From sequence record ON000910.1: a stretch of DNA of 64,000 nucleotides. One strand, given 5' to 3'. The translations under genes and the position numbers were made by a program. The number at the start of each line of letters is the position of its first letter. Within the stretch, counting starts at the first letter, position 1. Shown here one piece after another: positions 2,389 to 12,858 of the stretch. The notes beneath the pieces are model-generated. The model did no database searches and was not told where the DNA came from. It worked only from the letters and a program-made list of their open reading frames with translations.

Positions 2389-2655
2389 ATGTCACAACAA
2401 ACTGCTGAACAAGTAATCGAACAGAAAGACGCACAAATCAAAGATCTTAAAGTGCGTACCTTTGACCTACAAGAGACTCTTCAAGAAGAGCGCAATTCTT
2501 TTGGTCAGTTCGTGGGTGTACTAGCTCAACTACTCGATTTCGATCAGACGCAAGCAAGTTCTCTACAGAACTACGTTGACGAAATCGCAATTCTAACCGG
2601 TAAAGCTGAACGTCCTGCTGAAGGCGACGGCGAACAAGAAAAAGACGCTGAATAA
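2389..2655 (+). CDS. 57A: Tail fibre assembly chaperone gp57A
   Basis: Small acidic coiled-coil protein between gene 1 and 57B, as in T4. Confidence 0.7.
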   Translation: MSQQTAEQVIEQKDAQIKDLKVRTFDLQETLQEERNSFGQFVGVLAQLLDFDQTQASSLQNYVDEIAILTGKAERPAEGDGEQEKDAE

Positions 2656-3110
2656 TGAAACTATCTAAGTTCCTTGAAAGTCAGGGAACTTACGTTGGTA
2701 TCAGATTAGACGAGGCGAGTAAGCAAGAGTTAGTTCGATTGCAGAAAACGCTTCGTCTAAAAAATCCGTTAGAACCAGATAAATTTCACGTGACTGTGCT
2801 TTATAGTCGTAAGCAAATTGATGTACCTGTTGTCGATACCACTTTCGTTGCTACTGTTGAACATATCGACTGTTGGAAAACGCAAGACGGCAAATATGCA
2901 GTTGTTGCTAAGATGGTATGTCCAGAACTTGTAGAACGTCACGATGATCTTATCTCTATCGGTGGTACTCACGACTACCCTGACTATACCCCTCACGTTA
3001 CGTTGTCTTATGACGACGCGATCACACCTATGTCCGTCAACGCTGAAGTTCGGCTTGTTGATGAATATCTTGAACCACTTGATTTAAATTGGGTTGATAG
3101 TAATGACTGA
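2655..3110 (+). CDS. acb1: 2H phosphoesterase gp57B / anti-CBASS nuclease Acb1
   Basis: Two HxT motifs (FHVTVLYSR, PHVTLSY), W.TQDG, G.THDY.DYTPH and EY.EPL.L.W as in T4 57B. Confidence 0.88.
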   Translation: MKLSKFLESQGTYVGIRLDEASKQELVRLQKTLRLKNPLEPDKFHVTVLYSRKQIDVPVVDTTFVATVEHIDCWKTQDGKYAVVAKMVCPELVERHDDLISIGGTHDYPDYTPHVTLSYDDAITPMSVNAEVRLVDEYLEPLDLNWVDSND

Positions 3111-3357
3111 TTTATCTACTGAAGCAGTATTAAAGAAGTACAATGAAGCTCCCGAAACTCTAACTACTGAAGAGAACGTTGTATTATTGACGTATATCAT
3201 CGGTATGCAGACCGATCAGATTGCTTTACTTAAAGAGAACAACAAACTTTACGATAAAGCTATCACTGAGCTTCAGCAAGCTGTATCTCAGCTTCAAATC
3301 AAGCACGCTGCGCTTGAACGAGGTGAGACAGAAAGCGGTATCATTCTTTCAGTATAA
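3103..3357 (+). CDS. Hypothetical coiled-coil protein
   Basis: ORF overlapping the 57B stop. Confidence 0.65.
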   Translation: MTDLSTEAVLKKYNEAPETLTTEENVVLLTYIIGMQTDQIALLKENNKLYDKAITELQQAVSQLQIKHAALERGETESGIILSV

Positions 3358-3365
3358 AAACTCTC

Positions 3366-3402
3366 AAAAAGTTGTTGACTTATTCTGAAAAGCATGTAGA
3401 AT
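3366..3402 (+). promoter_or_regulatory. Early (sigma70-like) promoter
   Basis: A-tract, TTGACT (3375), TG-TAGAAT (3397). Confidence 0.7.
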
Positions 3403-3458
3403 GTATTTCATCGAGTCGAGAGACAGAACACAAACTTTCAACTCGATGAAATATTTGA

Positions 3459-3495
3459 AAAAAGTTGTTGACTTACACTGAAATGATGTTAAGAT
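3459..3495 (+). promoter_or_regulatory. Early promoter driving the ncRNA/tRNA cluster
   Basis: AAAAAAGTTGTTGACT (same upstream block as 3366) ... TAAGAT; start site expected near 3502. Confidence 0.65.
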
Positions 3496-3503
3496 TAACA
3501 CAG

Positions 3504-3612
3504 TTGATTAAGCGAGCTAAGTTCATCGTTCTCGCCTCTTATTGAAGATGAACAATATTGATTAAGCAGACTAAACTCATCGTTTCTGCCTCTTCTCTGA
3601 AGATGAGTAATA
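3504..3612 (+). ncRNA. Two tandem 54/55-nt H-type pseudoknot repeats
   Basis: Unit 1: S1 GCGAG/CTCGC, S2 GTTCATC/GATGAAC. Unit 2: S1 GCAGA/TCTGC, S2 ACTCATC/GATGAGT. Compensatory changes with conserved linkers. Confidence 0.75.
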
Positions 3613-3760
3613 TTTTAAATGTGCGTTAGCCGCAATGAATACATGGAGCCAGTATACGTTCTGGCGTGCAGGGATACTCTTAGCGGACGAATTCTCAATC
3701 AAAAAACTAGCTGAGTTAAAATTCGCTCAGTCGGCGTGCAAGTAGCGCACATTTAAAATA
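3613..3760 (+). ncRNA. ~145-nt structured RNA with long terminal stem and a variant GCAA motif
   Basis: TATTTTAAATGTGCG / CGCACATTTAAAATA terminal stem; internal hairpins GCCAG/CTGGC and CTGAG/CTCAG; GTGCGT-TA-GCCGCAA ... GCGCAC. Confidence 0.6.
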
Positions 3761-3776
3761 TCGAGAGTACATTGGT

Positions 3777-3899
3777 CGAGTGTTGGTGTAGTGGCAGCAC
3801 ACGTAGCATACTGTAATCAGGCATGATTATATTCAGCAACCAATTTACGCATATCATAGGGAGATCGTGGGAACGGTTCGATTCCGTTACACTCGACCA
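3777..3899 (+). ncRNA. tRNA chimera 1: Pro-like scaffold (C1-G72, loop ATAGGGA) with 49-nt insert in the anticodon stem
   Basis: Acceptor CGAGTGT/ACACTCG-ACCA, D arm, T arm AACGG-TTCGATT-CCGTT; insert 3804-3852 contains GTAATC-AG..GATTAT-AT-TCAGCAA. Confidence 0.8.
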
Positions 3900-3932
3900 A
3901 TGTACTCTCACTTATCAAGCGAGGTGAACAAT

Positions 3933-4082
3933 TTGATTGTATATCTTCTCGCACTAGTATTCATCGTCCTCTTTGCCTTGGACATTGAAGAAGAAAAGGT
4001 GCGCATTCATACTTTTGCGCTAATCATATGCGAACGGGTCATTCATCCCGTAAATAAAGCGCACGATTTCAGGTTGTGTTGA
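3933..4082 (+). CDS. Small putative membrane peptide (TTG start)
   Basis: GAGGTG SD 6 nt upstream; hydrophobic N-terminus IVYLLALVFIVLFAL. Confidence 0.4.
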   Translation: MIVYLLALVFIVLFALDIEEEKVRIHTFALIICERVIHPVNKAHDFRLC

Positions 4083-4156
4083 TTAGCTAAGGCAAAATAA
4101 ACTAGAGAATTTTTGGTGCTTGTGATTAACCACAAGCACTCTCAAGAACATATTGA

Positions 4157-4281
4157 GCAGGGTTGGTGTAGTGGCTAGCACACGTAGCATAAACGCAAGC
4201 TGTTAAGTTTGTATTCTGCAATCAATTTAGCATATCATTTCCAAGATCGTGACGCAGGTTCGAATCCTGCACCCTGCTCAA
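4157..4281 (+). ncRNA. tRNA chimera 2: Gly-like scaffold (G1-C72, U73, TTCCAA loop, 3' CAA) with 49-nt insert
   Basis: GCAGGGT/ACCCTGC, T arm GCAGG-TTCGAAT-CCTGC; insert 4185-4233 contains GCAAGC-TG-TTA-A-GTTTGT-AT-TCTGCAA. Confidence 0.8.
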
Positions 4282-4289
4282 TATGTTTT

Positions 4290-4396
4290 TACTACTTTGC
4301 CAACGAGAAAAATAATTTTCGCGGGGTGTTGGTTAAAAGGTTCGAATCCTTGGTTAGGTAGCGTTTCGACGCCCTGACAAGCGAAACAAAGTAGTA
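4290..4396 (+). ncRNA. Multibranch RNA with a T-loop hairpin
   Basis: TACTACTTTG/CAAAGTAGTA closing stem; AAGG-TTCGAAT-CCTT; CCAAC/GTTGG and GTTAGG/CCTGAC stems. Confidence 0.55.
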
Positions 4397-4403
4397 ATAT
4401 AAT

Positions 4404-4521
4404 GGTGAAGTTAGTTCAGTAGGTTAGAACGCCGGCCAAAAAAAACGAAGTCTGATAAGATTTCATTCTGCATTCACATGCACGCCGGAGGTCGCAGGTT
4501 CGAGTCCTGCACTTCACCTTC
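4404..4521 (+). ncRNA. tRNA chimera 3: Asp-like scaffold with insert in the anticodon loop, no encoded CCA
   Basis: GTTC-AGTAGGTTA-GAAC D arm, CCGGC/GCCGG stem, T arm GCAGG-TTCGAGT-CCTGC; insert contains GAAGTC-TG-ATA-A-GATTTC-AT-TCTGCAT. Confidence 0.78.
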
Positions 4522-4528
4522 AAATTCT

Positions 4529-4653
4529 GGAGAGTTAGCTCAGTCTGGTAGAGCAAAAGAATGTTAAAGAATACTGACAAGCATTCATGCTGCAAACCTT
4601 AATAACTAGGTAAATCTTTTTGTCACGTGGTTCAAATCCCGTACTCTCCACCA
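4529..4653 (+). ncRNA. tRNA chimera 4: scaffold with AAAGA/TCTTT anticodon stem enclosing a 54-nt expanded loop
   Basis: GGAGAGT/ACTCTCC-ACCA, GCTC/GAGC D arm, TTCAAAT T loop; insert contains GAATAC-TG-ACA-A-GCATTC-AT-GCTGCAA. Confidence 0.78.
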
Positions 4654-4667
4654 ATTTTCGAGGGTTT

Positions 4668-5036
4668 ATGAATAAGTTTAATGACATTAATGACGAACTT
4701 GATTGTATATTGCATCGTTGTGAGATTGTAAAGCGCAATCTTCGAAAATATTGTACATTTGCTGTTGAAATGCAGTATAGACTTATGATAAACTTCATTG
4801 GCATGGGTTGCTATCAACAAGTTCTGCCGATATTAGACAATCTAAATTATCACCCTGATACAAGTCAGTTTGATAATATTGAGATTATGCAAACTATAAA
4901 AGAATTGATGAAATGTGCAGATAAGCTCGATGAGCTACATCAACAAGACGCTTTTCATCAAATTAAATCGACTGCTCGTATTACAGAAGAAGCAAACATC
5001 TTCGCTGCGAAAGTTGGTCGATTTCTGGAGAAATGA
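4668..5036 (+). CDS. Hypothetical protein
   Basis: GAGG SD before ATG 4668; the longer track start lies inside a tRNA-like RNA. Confidence 0.65.
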   Translation: MNKFNDINDELDCILHRCEIVKRNLRKYCTFAVEMQYRLMINFIGMGCYQQVLPILDNLNYHPDTSQFDNIEIMQTIKELMKCADKLDELHQQDAFHQIKSTARITEEANIFAAKVGRFLEK

Positions 5037-5037
5037 T

Positions 5038-5115
5038 GGCCCTATAGCTCAACACGGTTAGAGCAACCGACTCATAATCGGTAGGTTACAGGTTCGAGTC
5101 CTGTTGGGGTCACCA
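5038..5115 (+). tRNA. tRNA-CAT (elongator Met or Ile2)
   Basis: Full cloverleaf, loop CTCATAA, ACCA end. Confidence 0.9.
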
Positions 5116-5194
5116 AAAATAAATTGAAAAAGTTGTTGACAGACGTTTCATCAACGTGTAGTATACACATTATCAACTACACGAGGAAAACATT

Positions 5195-5425
5195 ATGTCA
5201 CATAAATTGCTAGTTATCACATCAATGCACGGTTGCTACGTCGATTACGATTTCAGAACTGAAATGTTTGACAGATACATGTGTGATGTTGTGATTCCGA
5301 ACGACTCTGTTGTTTTGTACTCGGGTACAGTTTCAATAGATGAAATTCAAGCAGTTGCGAACGAATGTTACGCTGACATCAAGATTGAAGAAGTCAGTGA
5401 TGATGTTTTTGACAGCTATCTTTAA
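5195..5425 (+). CDS. Hypothetical early protein
   Basis: Upstream TTGACA...TAGTAT promoter and GAGG SD. Confidence 0.7.
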   Translation: MSHKLLVITSMHGCYVDYDFRTEMFDRYMCDVVIPNDSVVLYSGTVSIDEIQAVANECYADIKIEEVSDDVFDSYL

Positions 5426-5429
5426 AAAT

Positions 5430-5669
5430 GCCGCTAACTGGCGTACAATACACAGTGTATTCCCAACATTAGTGCAGACGTAGGCTCGCAACCTACGTTG
5501 GTACCGAATCACTGGGACCGAGTAGAAAGTGCATGTGAGATGTCGAAGTCTTGTATGTAGAAATAACGCTCGGCTGCTCTGAAATGCTGATTAGCTCTTA
5601 CTTCGAAACTCTAATTGGGTGGAAGAGGTGTTGTGTTTGACGTGTGTTCGATTCACACGAGCGGCGCCA
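5430..5669 (+). ncRNA. 240-nt tRNA-like RNA with tmRNA-type architecture
   Basis: GCCGCT/AGCGGC-GCCA acceptor, CGTGTG-TTCGATT-CACACG T arm, AACTGG D-like loop, ACAATAC/GTGTTGT helix enclosing ~175 nt. Confidence 0.65.
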
Positions 5670-5682
5670 AGAGGAAATTATA

Positions 5683-6207
5683 ATGAAACCATTGAAGTTC
5701 GTTGAAGCGTTCTCTAAAGAAGAACGTGCTGCTATGACGATTGAAGAACGTAGCAGACTTCGTAAAATATATAACGAACGCTATCAAGAGTATGTTGATA
5801 AGTACATCAATGTATTCACTCGAAAAGACTTTCGAAGAGAGCGTTGCTGGGTTATTCTTGCACGATGTAAAAAGACTGGTGAAATCATCGGTCGAATTGA
5901 AAATAGTTTTAGTATGGGATGGTCTAAAGAACGTGTTCGTGTTATTCGACCGTATCTAAACGGTAATTTCACGGGCGATGATCGCTTCTCTAAAGCTGAG
6001 TACAACAAAGCGTGTGCTGAGTACATAACTCATCATGAGAAACAAGTAAAGTCTCTCAGAGAAGCTTACAAAGACACTCACGACGTTTTCTTATCTCGTG
6101 TGGGTAGTAAGAACTGTCCTGTTTCTATTGATTGGGATACGTATTACAATAAAAAAGACAAACGAAACTTTGAATATCGAAATTTGAAGTTCAAAACGAA
6201 ATCATAA
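5683..6207 (+). CDS. Hypothetical basic protein
   Basis: GAGG SD, ATG 5683; the track start lies within the T arm of the ncRNA. Confidence 0.7.
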   Translation: MKPLKFVEAFSKEERAAMTIEERSRLRKIYNERYQEYVDKYINVFTRKDFRRERCWVILARCKKTGEIIGRIENSFSMGWSKERVRVIRPYLNGNFTGDDRFSKAEYNKACAEYITHHEKQVKSLREAYKDTHDVFLSRVGSKNCPVSIDWDTYYNKKDKRNFEYRNLKFKTKS

Positions 6208-6238
6208 ATACTTTCTTTTAGAGTTTAGAGGAAGAAGT

Positions 6239-6535
6239 ATGAAAACGTTTGGTGAATTCCTAATTGAATTTGGTGGCGGCGGATTTCAATCTGGCGCTGC
6301 TGATGACAGTAGATTTTTAGAAGAACTTGTTCGCAGGTTGCAGAAGAAGCAAGTTCAAATTAGTAAGAAAACTGATTCTGTGAATTGGGGTCATGGTAAA
6401 ATCACGGTTAGAGATGGGAAAGTTCGTTATATTACGAAATATGATGGCCCGCGTGATTTCAAAGAGTTTAGTAGTACACGTGAATTCATGGATGCGTTCA
6501 TGAAAGGTGACTACACTCAATTGCAAGACAAATAA
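6239..6535 (+). CDS. Putative internal head protein
   Basis: N-terminus MKTFGEFLIE resembles the T4 capsid-targeting sequence; late promoter CATAAATA at 6203. Confidence 0.6.
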   Translation: MKTFGEFLIEFGGGGFQSGAADDSRFLEELVRRLQKKQVQISKKTDSVNWGHGKITVRDGKVRYITKYDGPRDFKEFSSTREFMDAFMKGDYTQLQDK

Positions 6536-6540
6536 TTTAT

Positions 6541-6656
6541 AGTCGGGTAGCTCAGTGGTAGAGCACGAAGAATGATACTGACAAGTATCGCTCCAGCACT
6601 CCTTCAATTGCCTGTTAAGCACGTGGTCGCTGGTTCGAATCCAGCCCCGACTACCA
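6541..6656 (+). ncRNA. tRNA chimera 5: Asn(GTT) scaffold with 41-nt insert in the anticodon stem
   Basis: Removing 6568-6608 gives CGTGC-CTGTTAA-GCACG and a 75-nt cloverleaf with ACCA; insert contains TGATAC-TG-ACA-A-GTATCG-CT-CCAGCAC. Confidence 0.82.
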
Positions 6657-6682
6657 TTTTTGATAAACTAGTGAGGTATAAC

Positions 6683-6919
6683 ATGAGCGGAACATTTAAT
6701 ATCAACAAAACGTTACTGACTCCGAAACAATTGCGCAATCTAACAGATGAGCGTCTAAATGAATATCGCAAGTCGTTTCGTAAGCCTCTTGGTTTTTTGA
6801 AGCATCTGAACGATACAAACGAATTGACTTCAGATCAACACAAGAAATTCGTTGAGCTTAATAAGCACTATAACGACGAAATCCTTGTTGAAATGAACAA
6901 GCGAAAACACTTAGGTTAA
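6683..6919 (+). CDS. Hypothetical protein
   Basis: GAGG SD before ATG 6683. Confidence 0.65.
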   Translation: MSGTFNINKTLLTPKQLRNLTDERLNEYRKSFRKPLGFLKHLNDTNELTSDQHKKFVELNKHYNDEILVEMNKRKHLG

Positions 6920-7187
6920 TAAAATCGCAGAAAGTTGAAATTTTTTTCAATTTTCTGCGAAAATATCGCAAATCGTCAGATTTAGTGTTATAAGTACTAT
7001 AAAGAAACAAAACAAATTTTAATTTTTATTTCAAGAGAGCATTCAATGACGCATTCGTTTACACATTCATCTGAGACATTACGCAGCGATTTTCTGCGCT
7101 CAGAATTCGTGTATCTAGCGAATCCGATTGCGAACCAGAAGTGGGATACCCTCTTGTAGTCCGATAGTATAACATAGAAGTATACTT

Positions 7188-7212
7188 GAGGACGCAAATA
7201 GCGTCCTTTTTT
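7188..7212 (+). terminator. Rho-independent terminator
   Basis: GGACGC-AAATA-GCGTCC followed by T7. Confidence 0.8.
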
Positions 7213-7290
7213 TATGGGCGCAATAAAAGTCAAAAATTTTGTTTAACGTACTTTGATTACAGAGTATGATAAACAAAGTTAAAGAACAAA

Positions 7291-7364
7291 CGGGACGTGG
7301 CGTAAAGGTAGCGTTCATGCTTTGGGAGCATGTGGTAAGAGTTCGAGTCTCTTCGTCCCGACCA
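7291..7364 (+). tRNA. tRNA-Pro(TGG)
   Basis: Cloverleaf, loop TTTGGGA, ACCA. Confidence 0.9.
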
Positions 7365-7373
7365 ATTTAAAAT

Positions 7374-7450
7374 CCGTGACTAGCTCAATCTGGTAGAGTA
7401 CTCCGTTTGGGGCGGAGAAGTTAAGCGTTCGAATCGCTTGTCACGGACCA
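7374..7450 (+). tRNA. tRNA-Pro(TGG)
   Basis: Cloverleaf, loop TTTGGGG, ACCA. Confidence 0.9.
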
Positions 7451-7458
7451 GTTTTAAT

Positions 7459-7534
7459 GCCCGATTAGCTCAATTGGAAGAGCAGCGTCCTACGAAGGCG
7501 AAGGTTACAAGTTCGAATCTTGTATTGGGTGCCA
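7459..7534 (+). tRNA. tRNA-Arg(ACG)
   Basis: Cloverleaf, loop CTACGAA, GCCA. Confidence 0.9.
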
Positions 7535-7740
7535 GTTAGTGTTGTTTGATTGAAGCTCGTTTTCGCACATTCCCGAAACTGCTTCTACGATTTGATACGC
7601 TTAGGACCGTATCTCGTTAAGTACTGTCGAGATGATAGAATTTAGCGAACTTTTTCATAAATTAGTGTTTATGATGTCTTGAGCGAGTGTTAATATTAAC
7701 ACATAGAAAATGAAAACGTTAAGTTCTTCAAAATAAATTC

Positions 7741-7868
7741 AAAAAGATGTTTACAATGACGAAAACATCATGTACAATAGAGAAAAGCGAAATATCATTC
7801 AAAGCTGAATGAAAAGTTTTTCAAAAAAAGATGTTTACAACGATATAAACATCATGTACAATAGAGAA
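7741..7868 (+). promoter_or_regulatory. Two tandem near-identical T4-type early promoters
   Basis: AAAAAGATGTTTACAA-N-AAACATCATGTACAATAGAGAA at ~7741 and ~7826 (GTTTAC -35, TACAAT -10). Confidence 0.8.
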
Positions 7869-7872
7869 GAAC

Positions 7873-8091
7873 ATGAATGACATAATTAAAGATGTGTCAA
7901 AGTTGACACTGAAAGAAAACGAACGTGTAGTGTTTAGAGTTGATGTCGGTGATTTACCAGCATCGAAAGCTAATCAGTATATACAAAATTTAGTCGATTT
8001 ATTGAAAGAAGCGGGAATTACTAACTCAATTGTTATTCCGTCATCAATAGAAATTTCCGTAATCGATGAAAACGAATTAATGCGCAAGTAG
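7873..8091 (+). CDS. Small protein resembling a segment of T4-type portal (VDVGDLPASKANQY)
   Basis: ORF behind tandem early promoters; similarity to recalled portal motif FYIDVGNLP..KA.QY. Confidence 0.55.
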   Translation: MNDIIKDVSKLTLKENERVVFRVDVGDLPASKANQYIQNLVDLLKEAGITNSIVIPSSIEISVIDENELMRK

Positions 8092-8159
8092 CCCAATCTG
8101 GCAGAGGCACTGGTCTTAGAAACCAGAAGTTAAGAGTTCGAATCTCTTCTTGCGTACCA
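8082..8159 (+). tRNA. tRNA-Leu(TAG), short variable loop
   Basis: Loop CTTAGAA, 5-nt variable region, ACCA. Confidence 0.85.
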
Positions 8160-8160
8160 T

Positions 8161-8235
8161 GCACCCTTAGCTTATCAGGAAAAGCGGCGGATTGAAGTCC
8201 CGCAGTGCTCGGTTCGATTCCGAGGGGGTGCACCA
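8161..8235 (+). tRNA. tRNA-Phe(GAA)
   Basis: Cloverleaf, loop TTGAAGT, one anticodon-stem mismatch, ACCA. Confidence 0.8.
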
Positions 8236-8323
8236 TATTATAGCTTGTTTGTAAGAGTTAAATCAAGCAAGGGATTTTAGTTTTGAGTTATTTAGCAAAC
8301 GCTCTTAACGTGAAAATCAAATT

Positions 8324-8398
8324 GGGTCGTTAGTATAACGGTAGTACATCTGGCTTTTAACCAGAAGGGTGAGAGTTCGAATCTCTTGCGACCCACCA
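8324..8398 (+). tRNA. tRNA-Lys(TTT)
   Basis: Loop CTTTTAA, ACCA. Confidence 0.9.
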
Positions 8399-8409
8399 GT
8401 TTTTATAAT

Positions 8410-8486
8410 GCGTCGGTAGCTCATCATGGAAGAGCAGGGAGCTTTTAACTCTCAGGTGTCTGGTTCGAGTCCAGAGCGGCGTACCA
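8410..8486 (+). tRNA. tRNA-Lys(TTT)
   Basis: Loop CTTTTAA, ACCA; G7-G66 mismatch. Confidence 0.85.
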
Positions 8487-8549
8487 AATTAGATACATTG
8501 TGTATCGCTTTGCAAGTTAGATAGCTTGCAAATCAATATACAATTTAAT

Positions 8550-8624
8550 TCTCCCGTGGACTAACGGTAGGTCATCACCCTTTCAAGGTGAAGTGCGCGA
8601 GTTCGAATCTCGTCGGGAGAACCA
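8550..8624 (+). tRNA. tRNA-Glu(TTC)
   Basis: Loop CTTTCAA, ACCA. Confidence 0.88.
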
Positions 8625-8630
8625 TATTCT

Positions 8631-8716
8631 GGAGCGTACGTCTCAAGGTGAGACAGGGGACTGTAAATCCCTGACCCTTAACGGGTAGAGAGGTTCGATT
8701 CCTCTACGCTCCACCA
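8631..8716 (+). tRNA. tRNA-Tyr(GTA)
   Basis: Loop CTGTAAA, long variable arm, ACCA. Confidence 0.9.
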
Positions 8717-8721
8717 GTTTT

Positions 8722-8809
8722 AGCTTGCATACTGCAATTTAACTTAATCTATTGATCGCTCGGCGGGCATTGCTCAGACAGCGATAAACAGACCAAAGAA
8801 CGCAAGCTG
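8722..8809 (+). ncRNA. Stand-alone GCAA-motif RNA
   Basis: A-GCTTGC-AT-ACTGCAA ... GCAAGC-TG. Confidence 0.7.
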
Positions 8810-8818
8810 TTGAATAAT

Positions 8819-8895
8819 TGCGGAGTAGAGCAGCGGTCAGCTCGCCAGTTTCATAAGCTGGAGGTCAGTGGTTCGAATCCACTCTCACGCATCCA
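8819..8895 (+). tRNA. tRNA-Met(CAT), initiator-like D arm, irregular acceptor stem
   Basis: GAGC/GCTC D stem, loop TTCATAA, extra A in 3' acceptor strand, TCCA; lacks the GGG/CCC pairs of fMet. Confidence 0.7.
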
Positions 8896-8902
8896 AACAA
8901 AT

Positions 8903-9001
8903 GGAAGGCTTAGCCGAAAGATTCTGGGTAGCGGCAACGGTCTTGAAAACCGTCGGTCACCGGGAGGTGATGTTAGGGTTCGAATCCCTAGTCTTCCGCC
9001 A
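8903..9001 (+). tRNA. tRNA-Ser(TGA)
   Basis: Loop CTTGAAA, long variable arm, GCCA; enlarged D loop. Confidence 0.88.
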
Positions 9002-9064
9002 ATTAGTTAACCGGGAAGTTTAGTCACTTAACCGATTAACAGTGCGCTGAAATGCGCACACTTT

Positions 9065-9138
9065 AGTCCCTTAGCTCAACGGTAGAGCGTGCGACCGATA
9101 ATCGCTTGGTAAGAGTTCGATTCTCTTAGGGACTACCA
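9065..9138 (+). tRNA. tRNA-Ile(GAT)
   Basis: Loop CCGATAA (C33), ACCA. Confidence 0.85.
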
Positions 9139-9144
9139 AATTTT

Positions 9145-9218
9145 AGGGGCATGATGTAAAGGCAGCATGACGGATTCCAAACCCGTTCGTTAGAGTTCGA
9201 ATCTCTATGCCCCTGCCA
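9145..9218 (+). tRNA. tRNA-Trp(CCA)
   Basis: Loop TTCCAAA, GCCA. Confidence 0.88.
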
Positions 9219-9223
9219 GTTTA

Positions 9224-9282
9224 AGTAATCTTACAGCAAACAATACAAAACTTTTATTTGGAAAAAGCAAAAAGGATTACTG
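9224..9282 (+). ncRNA. Minimal GCAA-motif RNA
   Basis: A-GTAATC-TT-ACAGCAA ... GATTAC-TG with an A-rich loop. Confidence 0.7.
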
Positions 9283-9292
9283 TTTAAATTTA

Positions 9293-9368
9293 GGATCGCT
9301 AACTCAATGGTTAGAGTGCTCGCCTGTTAAGCGAGGAGTTCCGAGTTCGAGTCTCGGGCGGTCCGCCA
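9293..9368 (+). tRNA. tRNA-Asn(GTT)
   Basis: Loop CTGTTAA, GCCA. Confidence 0.92.
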
Positions 9369-9438
9369 AATTCGGAGAGTCACTACCGTTAAGTGTGAAC
9401 TTGAAAAAAACAAAGCAACTACTTTAAGTTGTCTTTGG

Positions 9439-9514
9439 GGAGCCGAGGTGTAAAAGGTTGCATGTCTCCCTGTCACGGAGAAGGTAGCGGGTTCGAAACC
9501 CGTCGGTTCCGCCA
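9439..9514 (+). tRNA. tRNA-Asp(GTC)
   Basis: Loop CTGTCAC, GCCA. Confidence 0.9.
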
Positions 9515-9533
9515 AAGATAATTTAAGAACAAT

Positions 9534-9607
9534 TGGGGATTGGTGTAAAGGCAGCATAACGTACTTTGAATGCGTTGGTATCAGTTCGAATCTGTTATCC
9601 CCAGCCA
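9534..9607 (+). tRNA. tRNA-Gln(TTG)
   Basis: Loop CTTTGAA, T1-A72, GCCA. Confidence 0.9.
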
Positions 9608-9615
9608 AATACCAT

Positions 9616-9732
9616 AGAGTGTTTTCAGCAAACAATTTACTAATATTCTTCTGATGAAAAGAAAAGTTCGGGGTTCGATTCCTCTTCAGTGTCGGTATCA
9701 CTGGTCTGGACGACGCTAGTAATAACACTCAG
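9616..9732 (+). ncRNA. GCAA-motif RNA enclosing a T-loop module (YrlA-like layout)
   Basis: A-GAGTGT-TT-TCAGCAA ... ACACTC-AG; internal GGGG-TTCGATT-CCTC and CAGTG/CACTG hairpins. Confidence 0.72.
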
Positions 9733-9736
9733 TTAC

Positions 9737-9811
9737 GCTCCTGAAGCATTGATGGCGATGCAGCGGTCTTGTAAACCGCAGAATTCGGTTCGATTCCGAA
9801 CGGGAGCACCA
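9737..9811 (+). tRNA. tRNA-Thr(TGT)
   Basis: Loop CTTGTAA, ACCA. Confidence 0.9.
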
Positions 9812-9836
9812 TATTGATTAGAGAGTGTTATCATGA

Positions 9837-9844
9837 TATAAATA
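9837..9844 (+). promoter_or_regulatory. T4-type late promoter
   Basis: TATAAATA upstream of 9875. Confidence 0.8.
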
Positions 9845-9874
9845 TTCATGTAACTACATTTTAGAGGTAATAAC

Positions 9875-10150
9875 ATGTCTATTAAAACATTTTCTGAATA
9901 TCTTAACGAAGCAAAGCATCGTGGGTCTGGCGTAGACACTCATGACGGGAAGATTCCGTATGTATACGCTGACAGTAAAGACGCTGCTGCATTTGCTGAT
10001 TTCGTATCGTCAATAGGTATGAAGCTTGATTCGAACGGTGAATTGAAGCTTTCTACACGAGATAAAGTACGAAAGTTCTTCTCAGAGCTTGATCAAGAAG
10101 CAACTAATTTCATGCTTCATGGCAACTTTGATATTATTGAATATATGTAA
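9875..10150 (+). CDS. Putative internal head protein
   Basis: MSIKTFSEYLNE capsid-targeting-like N-terminus; late promoter; GAGG SD. Confidence 0.62.
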   Translation: MSIKTFSEYLNEAKHRGSGVDTHDGKIPYVYADSKDAAAFADFVSSIGMKLDSNGELKLSTRDKVRKFFSELDQEATNFMLHGNFDIIEYM

Positions 10151-10165
10151 AAATTGGTGATTGTA

Positions 10166-10375
10166 ATGGTATATATTTCTGTATGGTGTGAATATGACAT
10201 TGGTGGGGATTTCGGTGGCAACAATAACGAAGATGTTTTTTCCGTTAGTGAAGAATTATCTAATGAAGAAGTTGAAGCAAAAGTTGCTGAATATATTTCT
10301 GACATTGTTGGTGAGCCGATTGAAGAACTTGAAGGTTTATACGGTTGGGAATATATTTCAATCACACAGTTGTAA
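10166..10375 (+). CDS. Hypothetical acidic protein
   Basis: ORF with GGTGA SD. Confidence 0.6.
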   Translation: MVYISVWCEYDIGGDFGGNNNEDVFSVSEELSNEEVEAKVAEYISDIVGEPIEELEGLYGWEYISITQL

Positions 10376-10382
10376 AAAATAT

Positions 10383-10457
10383 GGGCCGTTAGCTTAATTG
10401 GGAAAGCGCCTCACTTGCAATGAGGAAGATAGGGTTCGACTCCCTGCGTGTCCACCA
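10383..10457 (+). tRNA. tRNA-Ala(TGC), irregular acceptor stem
   Basis: Loop CTTGCAA, G3-U70, ACCA. Confidence 0.8.
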
Positions 10458-10531
10458 AATTTCGAACACATGAGCGTAGACTCTCTTTACTACCATCGTC
10501 TACACTAGCTCATGGTTCGAAACTTTTCAAT

Positions 10532-10607
10532 GCGCTGTTAGCTCAATTGGAAGAGCACGTCCCTTCTAAGGATGGGGTTATGAGTTCGAATCTCATACGG
10601 CGTGCCA
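10532..10607 (+). tRNA. tRNA-Arg(TCT)
   Basis: Loop CTTCTAA, GCCA. Confidence 0.92.
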
Positions 10608-10670
10608 TATTAAGCTCTTATCATGTGACGAATGATACTTTGCTTCGGCATATCACGAGCATGGTGAGAG

Positions 10671-10787
10671 AGACAATATACAGCAAACAATTGAAATTAC
10701 TTAAAAGAAGTGATGATCTTAACCTGGGCTGATTTTAACCTGAGCTTGCTTGGGCGCAGCTTGAAAGGAAAGATTCTCTCTGTCTAG
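10671..10787 (+). ncRNA. GCAA-motif RNA
   Basis: A-GACAAT-AT-ACAGCAAACAATT ... TGTC-TAG (4 of 6 bp). Confidence 0.6.
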
Positions 10788-10789
10788 AA

Positions 10790-11127
10790 ATAGTCAGATA
10801 GGCGCGTCGCTGAAACAGACGATATTTGCTTATTGAGAATCAATAAGCTAGTCAACTCCGATTTATGCAAAAGACGAAAAAACACTTCGGTATTGTCTGT
10901 ACTTAATTCGTCGGAAACGACACTGTAGCCGAAAGGCAAGTTTACTAACTTAGTTGTTAGTCGTGATACAGGAAGTATCATGTGGCATTATTATGAACGT
11001 TTCTAGTCATCGTCATGTAAAACAATCAAAACTAAGCAGAGGTAACAGTACCCACTATGTGGTTCCTCACTCAGACCATGAATATATGGTGTCAGCCAGT
11101 GTGCGATTAAATGAGTAATTACTGCAA
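10790..11127 (+). ncRNA. Candidate ~340-nt structured RNA with GAAA tetraloops, ending in a permuted GCAA motif
   Basis: GTCG-GAAA-CGAC, GCC-GAAA-GGC, GCTTATTG/CAATAAGC, TGATAC/GTATCA; TCACTC-AG ... GAGTAA-TT-ACTGCAA. Confidence 0.5.
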
Positions 11128-11129
11128 TT

Positions 11130-11205
11130 GGTGACGTAGCTCAAGTGGCAGAGCCACGCTTTCATACGGCGTAAGATCCGATTTCGAGTATCGGTGTCAC
11201 CTCCA
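11130..11205 (+). tRNA. tRNA-Met(CAT)
   Basis: Loop TTCATAC, TCCA end. Confidence 0.82.
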
Positions 11206-11230
11206 AATTCAAACAAAGAGGTTAAGAAGC

Positions 11231-11388
11231 ATGACTACTTTACACTAAGCAAGGGCAACATACGCGATAAGATTCGCTGTGTTGAAAATCGTCTCGCAGA
11301 AGAGACCAACCCGTTCTTTATAAGAACACTTACTGTAGAGCTTACGAATCTACGTGCAATACGTGATTTGTTCGACGCTTCAGATTAA
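11231..11388 (+). pseudogene. Frameshifted small ORF
   Basis: SD AGAGG and ATG ACT ACT TTA CAC TAA; inserting one T joins it to the open frame TLSKGNIRDK...DASD*. Confidence 0.45.
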
Positions 11389-11392
11389 CAAT

Positions 11393-11466
11393 GCGGGTAT
11401 GATGTAATGGTAGCATGACGTCCTTCCAAGTCGTTCGTCTCGGTTCGAGTCCGTGTACCCGCTCCA
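11393..11466 (+). tRNA. tRNA-Gly(TCC)
   Basis: Loop CTTCCAA, U73, TCCA. Confidence 0.9.
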
Positions 11467-11472
11467 AATTTT

Positions 11473-11546
11473 GGTCCCTTAGTATAATGGCAGTACGTCT
11501 CTTTTACACAGAGAAAGAAGTGGCTCGATTCCACTAGGGACTACCA
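11473..11546 (+). tRNA. tRNA-Val(TAC)
   Basis: Loop TTTACAC, T loop CTCGATT (C54), ACCA. Confidence 0.85.
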
Positions 11547-11569
11547 TTCTTTATGATGAGAAATAAATT

Positions 11570-11809
11570 ATGACGCCTGCATTACTTGAAACTCATGAAT
11601 ACGTAAACCACAACCAAATCGAAAAGCTACAGCAAATGGACAGACTTATGTTTGATTGTTGGCGTGCTGGGTATAAACGTGGCAAGATTTTAGAGCTTGC
11701 ATTGTCGATTGAGTCTTCAACAACCGAAGCAGACATCGAAATTTATTTCAAAAATATGTTTACAAGAGAACTATCGGCTGATAGTATCTACTTAAAGAAA
11801 ACTGTATGA
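11570..11809 (+). CDS. Hypothetical protein
   Basis: ORF between tRNAs with GAG SD. Confidence 0.6.
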   Translation: MTPALLETHEYVNHNQIEKLQQMDRLMFDCWRAGYKRGKILELALSIESSTTEADIEIYFKNMFTRELSADSIYLKKTV

Positions 11810-11961
11810 CGGAGTAGTGCTCCGACCGAATGACACACGCAAATGAGTCCGGTTGACAAACGTTATATGTCCCAAAGTATTGCAGGTAGCGACGGCGGTG
11901 TTGCTAGTAGATTTATCTATTTCTCCAAGACATAATGCAAGCTTTTAAAGTGTACTTTGGT

Positions 11962-12038
11962 GTGGCAGTGGGTGAAGTGGAAATACCCCCGGGTTGTGAT
12001 TCCGGAAGATGCGGGTTCGATCCCCGTCTGTCACCCCA
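11962..12038 (+). tRNA. tRNA-His(GTG)
   Basis: Loop TTGTGAT, C73, CCA; encoded -1 base is T, not G. Confidence 0.85.
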
Positions 12039-12050
12039 AAGTACATTTAT

Positions 12051-12124
12051 GCTCGAATCGTATAATGGCAGTATGACGGATTGCAAATCCGCAGGTCAGG
12101 GTTCGATTCCCTGTTCGAGCTCCA
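12051..12124 (+). tRNA. tRNA-Cys(GCA)
   Basis: Loop TTGCAAA, U73, TCCA. Confidence 0.9.
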
Positions 12125-12332
12125 GAAAAGACGATGCACAAGTTGGATGTGCAAAGGGGTCGGTTATGGTTCAACGCTTTATGCGTATAGGGTTAATCGC
12201 CTAGAACTGAGCATGTTTGAGTTGCTACTCACGAATGTAGTGATGAGTGCGTAAGAAGCCCGTAGCTAGTATAATGAGTTGATAACTCGGCAGCCTAGCA
12301 GTGTCGCCAACATCGACATAACGACACATAAT

Positions 12333-12409
12333 GCGCACGTGGTCCAATTGGCAGAGGCATGAGGCTTAAAATCTCAGGGATGGCGGTTCGAATCCGCCCG
12401 TGCGTACCA
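12333..12409 (+). tRNA. tRNA-Leu(TAA), short variable loop
   Basis: Loop CTTAAAA, 5-nt variable region, ACCA. Confidence 0.85.
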
Positions 12410-12524
12410 AATTCTAGCATAAGCCGCATTCTAACGAAGCTAGACTACCGCCGTTGAAAAACGGTCTCAGCCGAGCGAAAGCTGACAGGCGTTAGGGATT
12501 AAAGAGTTGCGGCAGCTTATTCAA

Positions 12525-12601
12525 GCCCAACTAGTCCAATTGGCAGAGGCGCTAGTTTCAAACACTAGATGATCCGAGTTCGAATCTCGGGTTGGGCACC
12601 A
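12525..12601 (+). tRNA. tRNA-Leu(CAA), short variable loop
   Basis: Loop TTCAAAC, 5-nt variable region, ACCA. Confidence 0.85.
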
Positions 12602-12697
12602 AATTCACTTAGCAACGCGAATCGAAAGAGAGTGGATAGACCTGCTAAGAGTCCCGCTAGGTCTTTAAATTATCTAAAGTGGATCTGCGAAGCGCGT

Positions 12698-12732
12698 GGC
12701 ACACGTCAGCAATAAGAGCAAATATGTGTCTG
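12698..12732 (+). ncRNA. Minimal GCAA-motif hairpin
   Basis: GGCACA-CG-TCAGCAA ... TGTGTC-TG. Confidence 0.6.
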
Positions 12733-12769
12733 AGCATGAGAGCAGCATGCCACTAATTGATGAGACGTT

Positions 12770-12858
12770 GGAAGCATGGTCTAAAGGTATGACAGCACCC
12801 TGCTAAGGTGTCGGACGTTAATAGCGTTCTCTGGGTTCGACTCCCAGTGCTTCCGCCA
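12770..12858 (+). tRNA. tRNA-Ser(GCT)
   Basis: Loop CTGCTAA, long variable arm, GCCA. Confidence 0.9.

Follow-up and report, generated by a model that had tools for sequence, protein, structure and literature searches.

A tandem pair of covarying pseudoknots at the head of the tRNA region of KVP40-like Vibrio phages, a candidate phage small RNA

What role could be played by two similar pseudoknot units that stand at the predicted start of an early phage transcript and are followed by no toxin gene? This question is raised by a 64,000-nt stretch of sequence record ON000910.1 (hereafter the window), in which the original prediction placed tandem H-type pseudoknots at 3504-3612 and proposed that they act as an RNA decoy against host defence, mimicking an antitoxin. 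The window is KVP40-like Vibrio phage DNA, as blastn with a 1-kb query showed that positions 3300-4300 were 100% identical to Vibrio phage XZ1, 87-99% identical to about 30 KVP40-like phages (Straboviridae; Schizotequatrovirus, Mylasvirus) and approximately 79% identical to a further group of phages from oyster and seawater. The genes 5′ of the units encode a dNMP kinase, a small ORF, gp57B and an 87-aa ORF, among which gp57B has the following match:

2655-3110, plus strand: gp57B, Acb1 (Pfam PF23474, E = 6.8e-46)

By this match gp57B is a clear Acb1, an anti-CBASS 2H-phosphodiesterase, and acb1 lies directly 5′ of the locus of pseudoknots, non-coding RNAs and tRNAs; its orthologues are labelled "RNA ligase" or hypothetical in the records of several relatives. 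On the 3′ side of the units follows a tRNA cluster at 4405-12858 (26 ARAGORN and 29 Rfam tRNA calls, all on the plus strand), and about 9 kb downstream of the units are largely untranslated.

The tandem units, their promoters and their fold

The promoters and units were located as follows:

3375-3402, plus strand: promoter P1, TTGACT-16-TAGAAT, hexamers conserved in 13 phages
3468-3495, plus strand: promoter P2, TTGACT-16-TAAGAT with an extended TG, sigma-70/T4-early-like, predicted +1 at about 3501-3503
3504-3557, plus strand: unit 1, 54 nt, stem S1 3512-3516/3531-3535, stem S2 3521-3527/3547-3553, 74.3 bits with covariance model R1
3558-3612, plus strand: unit 2, 55 nt, stem S1 3566-3570/3585-3589, stem S2 3575-3581/3602-3608, 81.3 bits with covariance model R1

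Tandem Repeats Finder detected the repeat at 3504-3614 with a period of 54, 2.0 copies, 83% matches and a score of 148, and the shared core pattern occurred exactly twice in the window, while none was expected from 100 shuffles. These results confirmed that two tandem units of 54 and 55 nt occupy 3504-3612. The −10 box of P2 ends 8 nt before unit 1, and unit 1 starts 2-3 nt after the predicted +1, in keeping with the claimed distance of about 2 nt from the start of an early transcript, the start itself being a prediction. Both P1 and P2 were conserved in all relatives aligned, and both are preceded by an A-rich box, AAAGTTGTTGAC, for which 6 matches at ≤1 mismatch were found vs. 0.7 expected; an exact copy lies at 5129 inside the tRNA region, where it belongs to a third promoter at 5129-5164. 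The strand of the fold is also the strand of the promoters, of all tRNAs, and of the tRNA-Asn next to a marine copy of the unit described below. A terminator scan of 3000-5200 detected one terminator-like site only, at 3042-3054 upstream of the units, and none after them.

Both units are composed, from 5′ to 3′, of a tail UUGAUUAA, S1a (5 nt), loop L1 (CUAA), S2a (7 nt), a GUU junction, S1b, a long loop, S2b and a short 3′ tail, which is AAUA in unit 1. The long loop is pyrimidine-rich, 11-12 nt in length and of the form CCUCUU-N2-3-UGAA, and across the alignment L1 is CUAA or CUAG (4-5 nt) and the junction is GUU (3 nt). The stem order S1a-S2a-S1b-S2b, with 5 bp in S1 and 7 bp in S2, is that of an H-type pseudoknot, and its spans are feasible, that is, a 4-nt L1 across the 7-bp S2 and an 11-12-nt long loop across the 5-bp S1. 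As isolated stems, S1 was calculated at −4.9 and −4.3 kcal/mol and S2 at −7.7 and −7.9 kcal/mol for units 1 and 2, respectively, and the best nested folds (MFE) at −9.6 and −9.4 kcal/mol. The nested MFE of 3500-3620 was no better than that of shuffles (z = −0.61); this value is uninformative and was left out of the evidence, because the nested-only predictor cannot form pseudoknots.

The orthologous region from 12 relatives was then aligned with the window (13 phages), the single units were aligned as A1, and the marine copy was added in A2, which comprises 18 distinct unit sequences from the 13 phages and one marine element. In A2, all 214 of 214 pair cells were standard pairs, and 7 of 12 pairs had double compensatory changes. 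The covariation score was 0.554 vs. 0.234 in shuffles, with 0 of 500 shuffles reaching 0.554, and pairing was only 24-56% in a slid control in which the 3′ partners were shifted by 1-3 columns. The original prediction had read the stems of the two units, GCGAG/CTCGC vs. GCAGA/TCTGC and GTTCATC/GATGAAC vs. ACTCATC/GATGAGT, as compensatory; they were recovered as such at the places predicted, and the orthologues added independent changes, so that at least 10 separate compensatory events were counted among paralogues, orthologues and the marine copy. In detail, the last S1 pair of unit 1 is changed from G-C to A-U in nt-1, CZ01, F86 and D48x; the first S1 pair of unit 2 is changed from G-C to A-U in KVP40-type phages, with a G-U intermediate in phage 1.081.O; two S2 pairs of unit 2 are changed in F86/D48x; and the marine copy has new pairs in both S1 and S2. 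The stem order and the fully paired cells confirmed the H-type pseudoknots.

Invariant columns cluster in the loops, the junction and the 5′ tail, and also in the inner S2 pairs, the inner three to four of which, next to the GUU junction, are invariant in A2. The mean pairwise identity was 0.90-0.93 in the units vs. 0.60-0.74 in the adjacent promoter spacers. Judged from these alignments, the units are under purifying selection, and covarying stems together with invariant loops and conservation above the spacers are the signature of a functional RNA with specific loop contacts. The region thus almost certainly encodes a structured functional RNA. Small ORFs are annotated over it in some records, as would be expected of a coding region; however, they vary in strand, frame and length between genome records (KVP40.0320 and, as different ORFs, those of F86 and D48x lie on the minus strand, while QD01 has four tiny ones on the plus strand), and those of the relatives are broken in the window, and coding was rejected on these grounds. 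A recent DNA duplication without function and a double-stranded DNA binding site were likewise rejected, by compensatory changes that keep two crossing helices and by conservation above the flanks, and these three explanations are, taken together, exceedingly improbable.

Distribution of the unit and the RNAs around it

The unit region was detected in 50 Vibrio phage records by blastn. Phage 1.081.O carries a single unit behind the same promoter, with an S1 of the unit 2 type and an S2 of the unit 1 type; since a single crossover between units 1 and 2 cannot yield this mix, 1.081.O more likely represents the unduplicated state. When the covariance model R1 was run over the window and 57 loci, exactly two copies were found in the window and no further copies. 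In IMG/VR, the first pattern returned 33 stretches, of which the true ones were KVP40 and VH7D only, and a stem-independent loop pattern led to the same two; a locus search anchored on Acb1 gave close relatives only. Further, scans of 185,579 species-representative genomes and of the JGI metagenomes, one each, produced one further true homologue, in three records: PBMB01000011.1, a 75-kb contig binned as a Chloroflexota MAG, and the marine metagenome contigs CEVA01033652.1 and CEUY01000564.1. The known range is therefore about 50 KVP40-like records and one marine element.

The marine element carries a single unit, which ends 9 nt upstream of a tRNA-Asn. This unit is preceded by a promoter-plus-small-RNA module in duplicate and by some 130 nt of a further RNA, and it falls among the first ~200 nt of the predicted transcript, immediately ahead of the first tRNA. 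The element has no protein in common with the window, and its ORFs gave no PHROG, Pfam, PADLOC or PDB match except DUF4942. The element is AT-rich, it contains duplicated promoter-plus-small-RNA modules, and its DUF4942 protein has distant relatives in Helicobacter prophages. Because single copies occur in 1.081.O and in the marine element, in the latter between a small RNA and tRNA-Asn, the motif is not tied to the 5′ end or to a downstream ORF, and the tandem array is a derived state rather than a defining feature. As far as this distribution indicates, the motif is a mobile module of tRNA/ncRNA arrays, in which a single copy next to a tRNA probably came first and the tandem state is derived.

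Structured RNAs flank the units within 0-10 nt, and further structured elements continue into the tRNA cluster:

3404-3453, plus strand: 50-nt hairpin at the +1 of the P1 transcript, 16 pairs, 205 of 208 cells paired
3613-3758, plus strand: ~146-nt structured RNA with a 13-bp closing stem, abutting unit 2; 37 consensus pairs, 18 of them doubly compensatory (13 phages)
3763-3909 and ~4127-4290, plus strand: two RNAs with D-arm-like and T-arm-like elements inside a 20-bp or 16-bp closing stem
4291-4392, plus strand: ~100-nt RNA with an 11-bp closing stem and a T-arm hairpin; also in marine CEUY01000564.1, ~9870-9965, minus strand
4405-4518, 4529-4650 and 6541-6653, plus strand: long tRNA genes, 50-56 bits with Rfam tRNA

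The base of the stem of the P1 hairpin, UUCAUC/GAUGAA, resembles S2 of unit 1, and this likeness, together with the upstream box common to P1 and P2, suggests an old duplication of a promoter-plus-RNA module. The RNA at 3613-3758, which is part of the same predicted precursor as the units, had no Rfam match, and by analogy it may be the counterpart of RNAC and RNAD, the stable small non-tRNA RNAs of the T4 tRNA region, whose function is unknown. The units are likewise small non-tRNA RNAs predicted to be co-transcribed with the tRNA cluster of a T4-type phage, although RNAC and RNAD, to which they are likened by description only, have not been reported as tandem pseudoknots.

The RNAs at 3763-3909 and ~4127-4290 received no tRNA call from ARAGORN or Rfam, and with a tRNA-like domain carried on a long stem they recall the Y-RNA-like (YrlA) architecture; a 71-aa ORF annotated in KVP40 overlaps the former and is probably spurious. 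The RNA at 4291-4392 shares 30 identical nt of its T-arm-like hairpin with the marine element, in which the closing stem differs by compensation, so that two unrelated elements have both this RNA and the pseudoknot unit; a T-arm pattern scan of viral contigs gave no match. The tRNAs at 4405-4518 and 4529-4650 contain a 46-49-nt insertion in the anticodon loop, and their KVP40 orthologues are annotated as tRNA-Pseudo-5 and tRNA-Pseudo-4; the tRNA at 6541-6653 has a similar extra length. Judged by eye, the insertions include a small hairpin with a loop like an anticodon loop (CUGAUAA, CUGACAA), and they are far too short for group I introns.

Comparison with type III antitoxins and other known RNAs

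In type III systems, the antitoxin (ToxI, CptI, TenpI or antiQ) is encoded as tandem pseudoknot repeats close to a promoter, a terminator and the toxin gene come next, and the toxin cuts the repeat RNA at A-rich sites. Behind the operon promoter, such arrays hold some 1.9-5.6 direct repeats, each 31-62 nt long; tenpI arrays have 1.9-3.0 copies of 39-57 nt that often differ from one another, and tenpIN systems are known from Vibrionales and Alteromonadales. In tenpI and cptI, L1 is 1 nt, and a long A-rich loop packs on S1. Phage phiTE evades ToxIN through an expansion of pseudo-ToxI repeats, which are like ToxI at most positions. The background on which the original prediction drew, that is, the promoter-proximal pseudoknot repeats and the phiTE escape, agrees with this literature.

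Similar to a tenpI-type antitoxin, the window has two non-identical tandem repeats, of a length within the tenpI range, right behind a promoter, and each repeat folds into an H-type pseudoknot between single-stranded tails. However, the phage unit also occurs as a single copy, which is likely its ancestral state, and the array is embedded in a tRNA/ncRNA array, with no terminator between the repeats and a toxin gene in the scan of 3000-5200. No ToxN-, CptN- or TenpN-type toxin was recognised by Pfam, PADLOC or PDB sequence among the ORFs at 3867-6919 of the ~250-kb genome, and for these ORFs the claim that no toxin gene follows holds; an AF2 model of the ORF at 4668-5033 was all-helical and of low confidence, too poor for a fold search. 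The loop architecture also differs, as the phage units have an L1 of 4 nt (4-5 nt across the alignment) and a 3-nt junction in place of the 1-nt L1 of tenpI/cptI, and a pyrimidine-rich in place of an A-rich long loop.

A relation in sequence to antitoxins was not found either. The units had no match in Rfam 15 at the gathering score over the whole window, at E ≤ 10 on 3300-4200, or at E ≤ 1 on 3760-4700; the comparison with antitoxin RNA models suggested along with the original prediction thus gave no match at E ≤ 10, a result whose weight depends on the antitoxin families that Rfam contains. The pattern scan of 185,579 species-representative bacterial genomes and of metagenomes revealed no host counterpart, which is a weak negative because 21 exact bases were required and each species was represented by one genome, and blastn against PLSDB plasmids and 5,426 E. 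coli genomes found no similar sequence. Compared with pseudo-ToxI of phiTE, the units are likewise a phage-encoded, non-coding, repeated pseudoknot RNA, predicted to be early as pseudo-ToxI is expressed during infection; in contrast, pseudo-ToxI matches host ToxI at most positions and is recognised thereby.

In the proposal under examination, the units would mimic a host antitoxin of the tenpI, toxI or cptI type and sequester a type III endoribonuclease released during infection. The array behind its promoter, the occurrence of tenpIN in Vibrionales and Alteromonadales, the phiTE precedent of an RNA mimic, the predicted early timing and the adjacent anti-defence gene acb1 are all in its favour. 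However, in addition to the loop layout, the missing Rfam match and the missing bacterial repeat, the linkers contain no A-run of the kind published for cleavage sites, a single copy next to a tRNA is probably the older arrangement, and loops that do not vary between divergent phages and hosts are easier to reconcile with a conserved partner than with a defence toxin that evolves fast. Every available test left the decoy claim without support and the resemblance a formal one, and a mimic of this kind appears quite unlikely. Slightly better odds, though still doubtful, may be given to the broader idea that KVP40-like phages carry a fixed, naturally maintained RNA decoy, a pseudoknot module that moves with tRNA-like RNAs among marine mobile elements and neutralises a host RNA-binding defence protein, whether a tenpN-like toxin or a tRNA-directed nuclease. 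If true, the decoy would be the first wild-type, lineage-wide anti-defence RNA of its kind, and the phage tRNA region would be a combined RNA counter-defence locus next to acb1.

Other known RNA classes were compared as well. HDV-like/theta, pistol, twister and hatchet ribozymes were rejected as there was no Rfam match, and in an HDV-like fold the 3-nt GUU between S2a and S1b would leave no room for the P3 hairpin that such ribozymes have between P2 5′ and P1 3′. A tRNA or tmRNA identity was rejected, since ARAGORN and Rfam called tRNAs only from 4405 onward and no tmRNA; a CsrA sponge was rejected because the units contain no GGA, and a conserved palindrome at the junction because it is not conserved in KVP40. 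The mRNA leader of T4/T2 gene 32 has an H-type pseudoknot near its 5′ end that is a protein-binding site for translational autoregulation, and, like the units, it belongs to a T4-type phage and is followed by an AU-rich, UUAA-containing single strand; in contrast to the units, it occurs only once, in the gene 32 leader, whereas no ORF lies downstream of the units.

Possible roles of the units

The original prediction had offered two alternatives, a ligand-binding RNA and a 5′ nuclease-blocking structure. A ligand-sensing aptamer, that is, a tandem riboswitch, would account for covarying stems with invariant loops, the tandem arrangement and the position in a 5′ leader. However, no Rfam riboswitch model matched at E ≤ 10, and neither a terminator, nor a sequestered ribosome-binding site, nor an ORF was found after the units that could serve as an expression platform, whether for preQ1, SAM-II/V, fluoride, guanidine-III or NAD+-II riboswitches; further, the marine unit directly precedes a tRNA. 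A riboswitch is thus very unlikely. A structure that blocks a 5′ nuclease is also unlikely, given a single-stranded 5′ tail, the internal position of the marine unit, and a P1 hairpin that already fits such a role.

A serious rival is a role in cis, in which the units would be a leader of the tRNA/ncRNA precursor that acts on co-transcriptional folding, nuclease processing, transcript stability or the resistance of RNA polymerase to Rho along a long untranslated operon. Precedents for the last are the put and EAR RNAs, processive-antitermination RNAs that are promoter-proximal at the head of a long transcript. As with put of HK022, the units are promoter-proximal structured RNA, and their paralogous copies differ by compensatory changes; put, however, is made of stem-loop pairs and not of H-type pseudoknots, and no terminators that would have to be read through are evident downstream of the units. 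The units are promoter-proximal in all vibriophages, the marine unit is near the start of its predicted transcript and before the first tRNA, and the ~9 kb downstream are largely untranslated, all of which would suit a leader. Nevertheless, a conserved single-stranded 5′ tail of 8-10 nt would not shield a 5′ end, for which the P1 hairpin already fits; the other promoters in the cluster (4374-4403 and 5136-5164) lack such a unit; and a cis signal would not need two diverged copies. On balance, a cis role is somewhat unlikely, although of the alternatives it has to be taken most seriously.

The reading that we favour tentatively, with a probability of about 0.45, is that the units are copies of a previously undescribed ~55-nt phage small RNA, which would act in trans on a protein through its invariant loops after release from an early precursor. 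Action in trans is favoured because the loops are invariant in unrelated contexts, the flanks are tight RNAs and AU-rich linkers, and two diverged copies have stayed intact; the early-type promoters and the tRNAs on the same strand as the units, and the position of acb1 directly upstream, were also counted for it. Against it, neither a terminator nor another 3′-end signal that would define a discrete small RNA was found, and the range of the unit is narrow, while the 5′-proximal position in the vibriophages fits a cis role equally well.

Such a small RNA could arise as follows. Strong early promoters of the host type would start transcription as soon as infection begins, and the units would come first in a long non-coding precursor that runs into the other structured RNAs and the tRNA cluster. 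Host tRNA-processing nucleases may cut at the flanking structured RNAs and the AU-rich single-stranded linkers, which would yield an RNA of about 110 nt with both units from P2, or of about 210 nt from P1 with the 5′ hairpin in addition. The released RNA would bind a protein in trans, as a decoy or sponge, through the invariant loops and the 5′ tail, and duplication of the unit may double the dose or suit a dimeric partner.

No curated family in Rfam 15 matched the units, and no description of them was found in the literature searched. T4-type phages are among the best-studied viruses, yet a 2010 review stated that T4 had so far yielded no characterised riboswitch or trans-acting small RNA; here, such a phage group carries a compact RNA whose fold is defined and backed by covariation and whose loops do not vary. 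Its predicted synthesis falls among the earliest of infection, it neighbours a known anti-defence gene where the tRNA cluster begins, and it is common to an otherwise unrelated marine element. The unit is thus a concrete candidate for a regulatory or counter-defence RNA of phages, and at 54 nt it is small enough for structural work. Further, the genomes of KVP40-like phages appear to hold a whole set of unannotated structured RNAs, which are recorded as hypothetical proteins or not at all.
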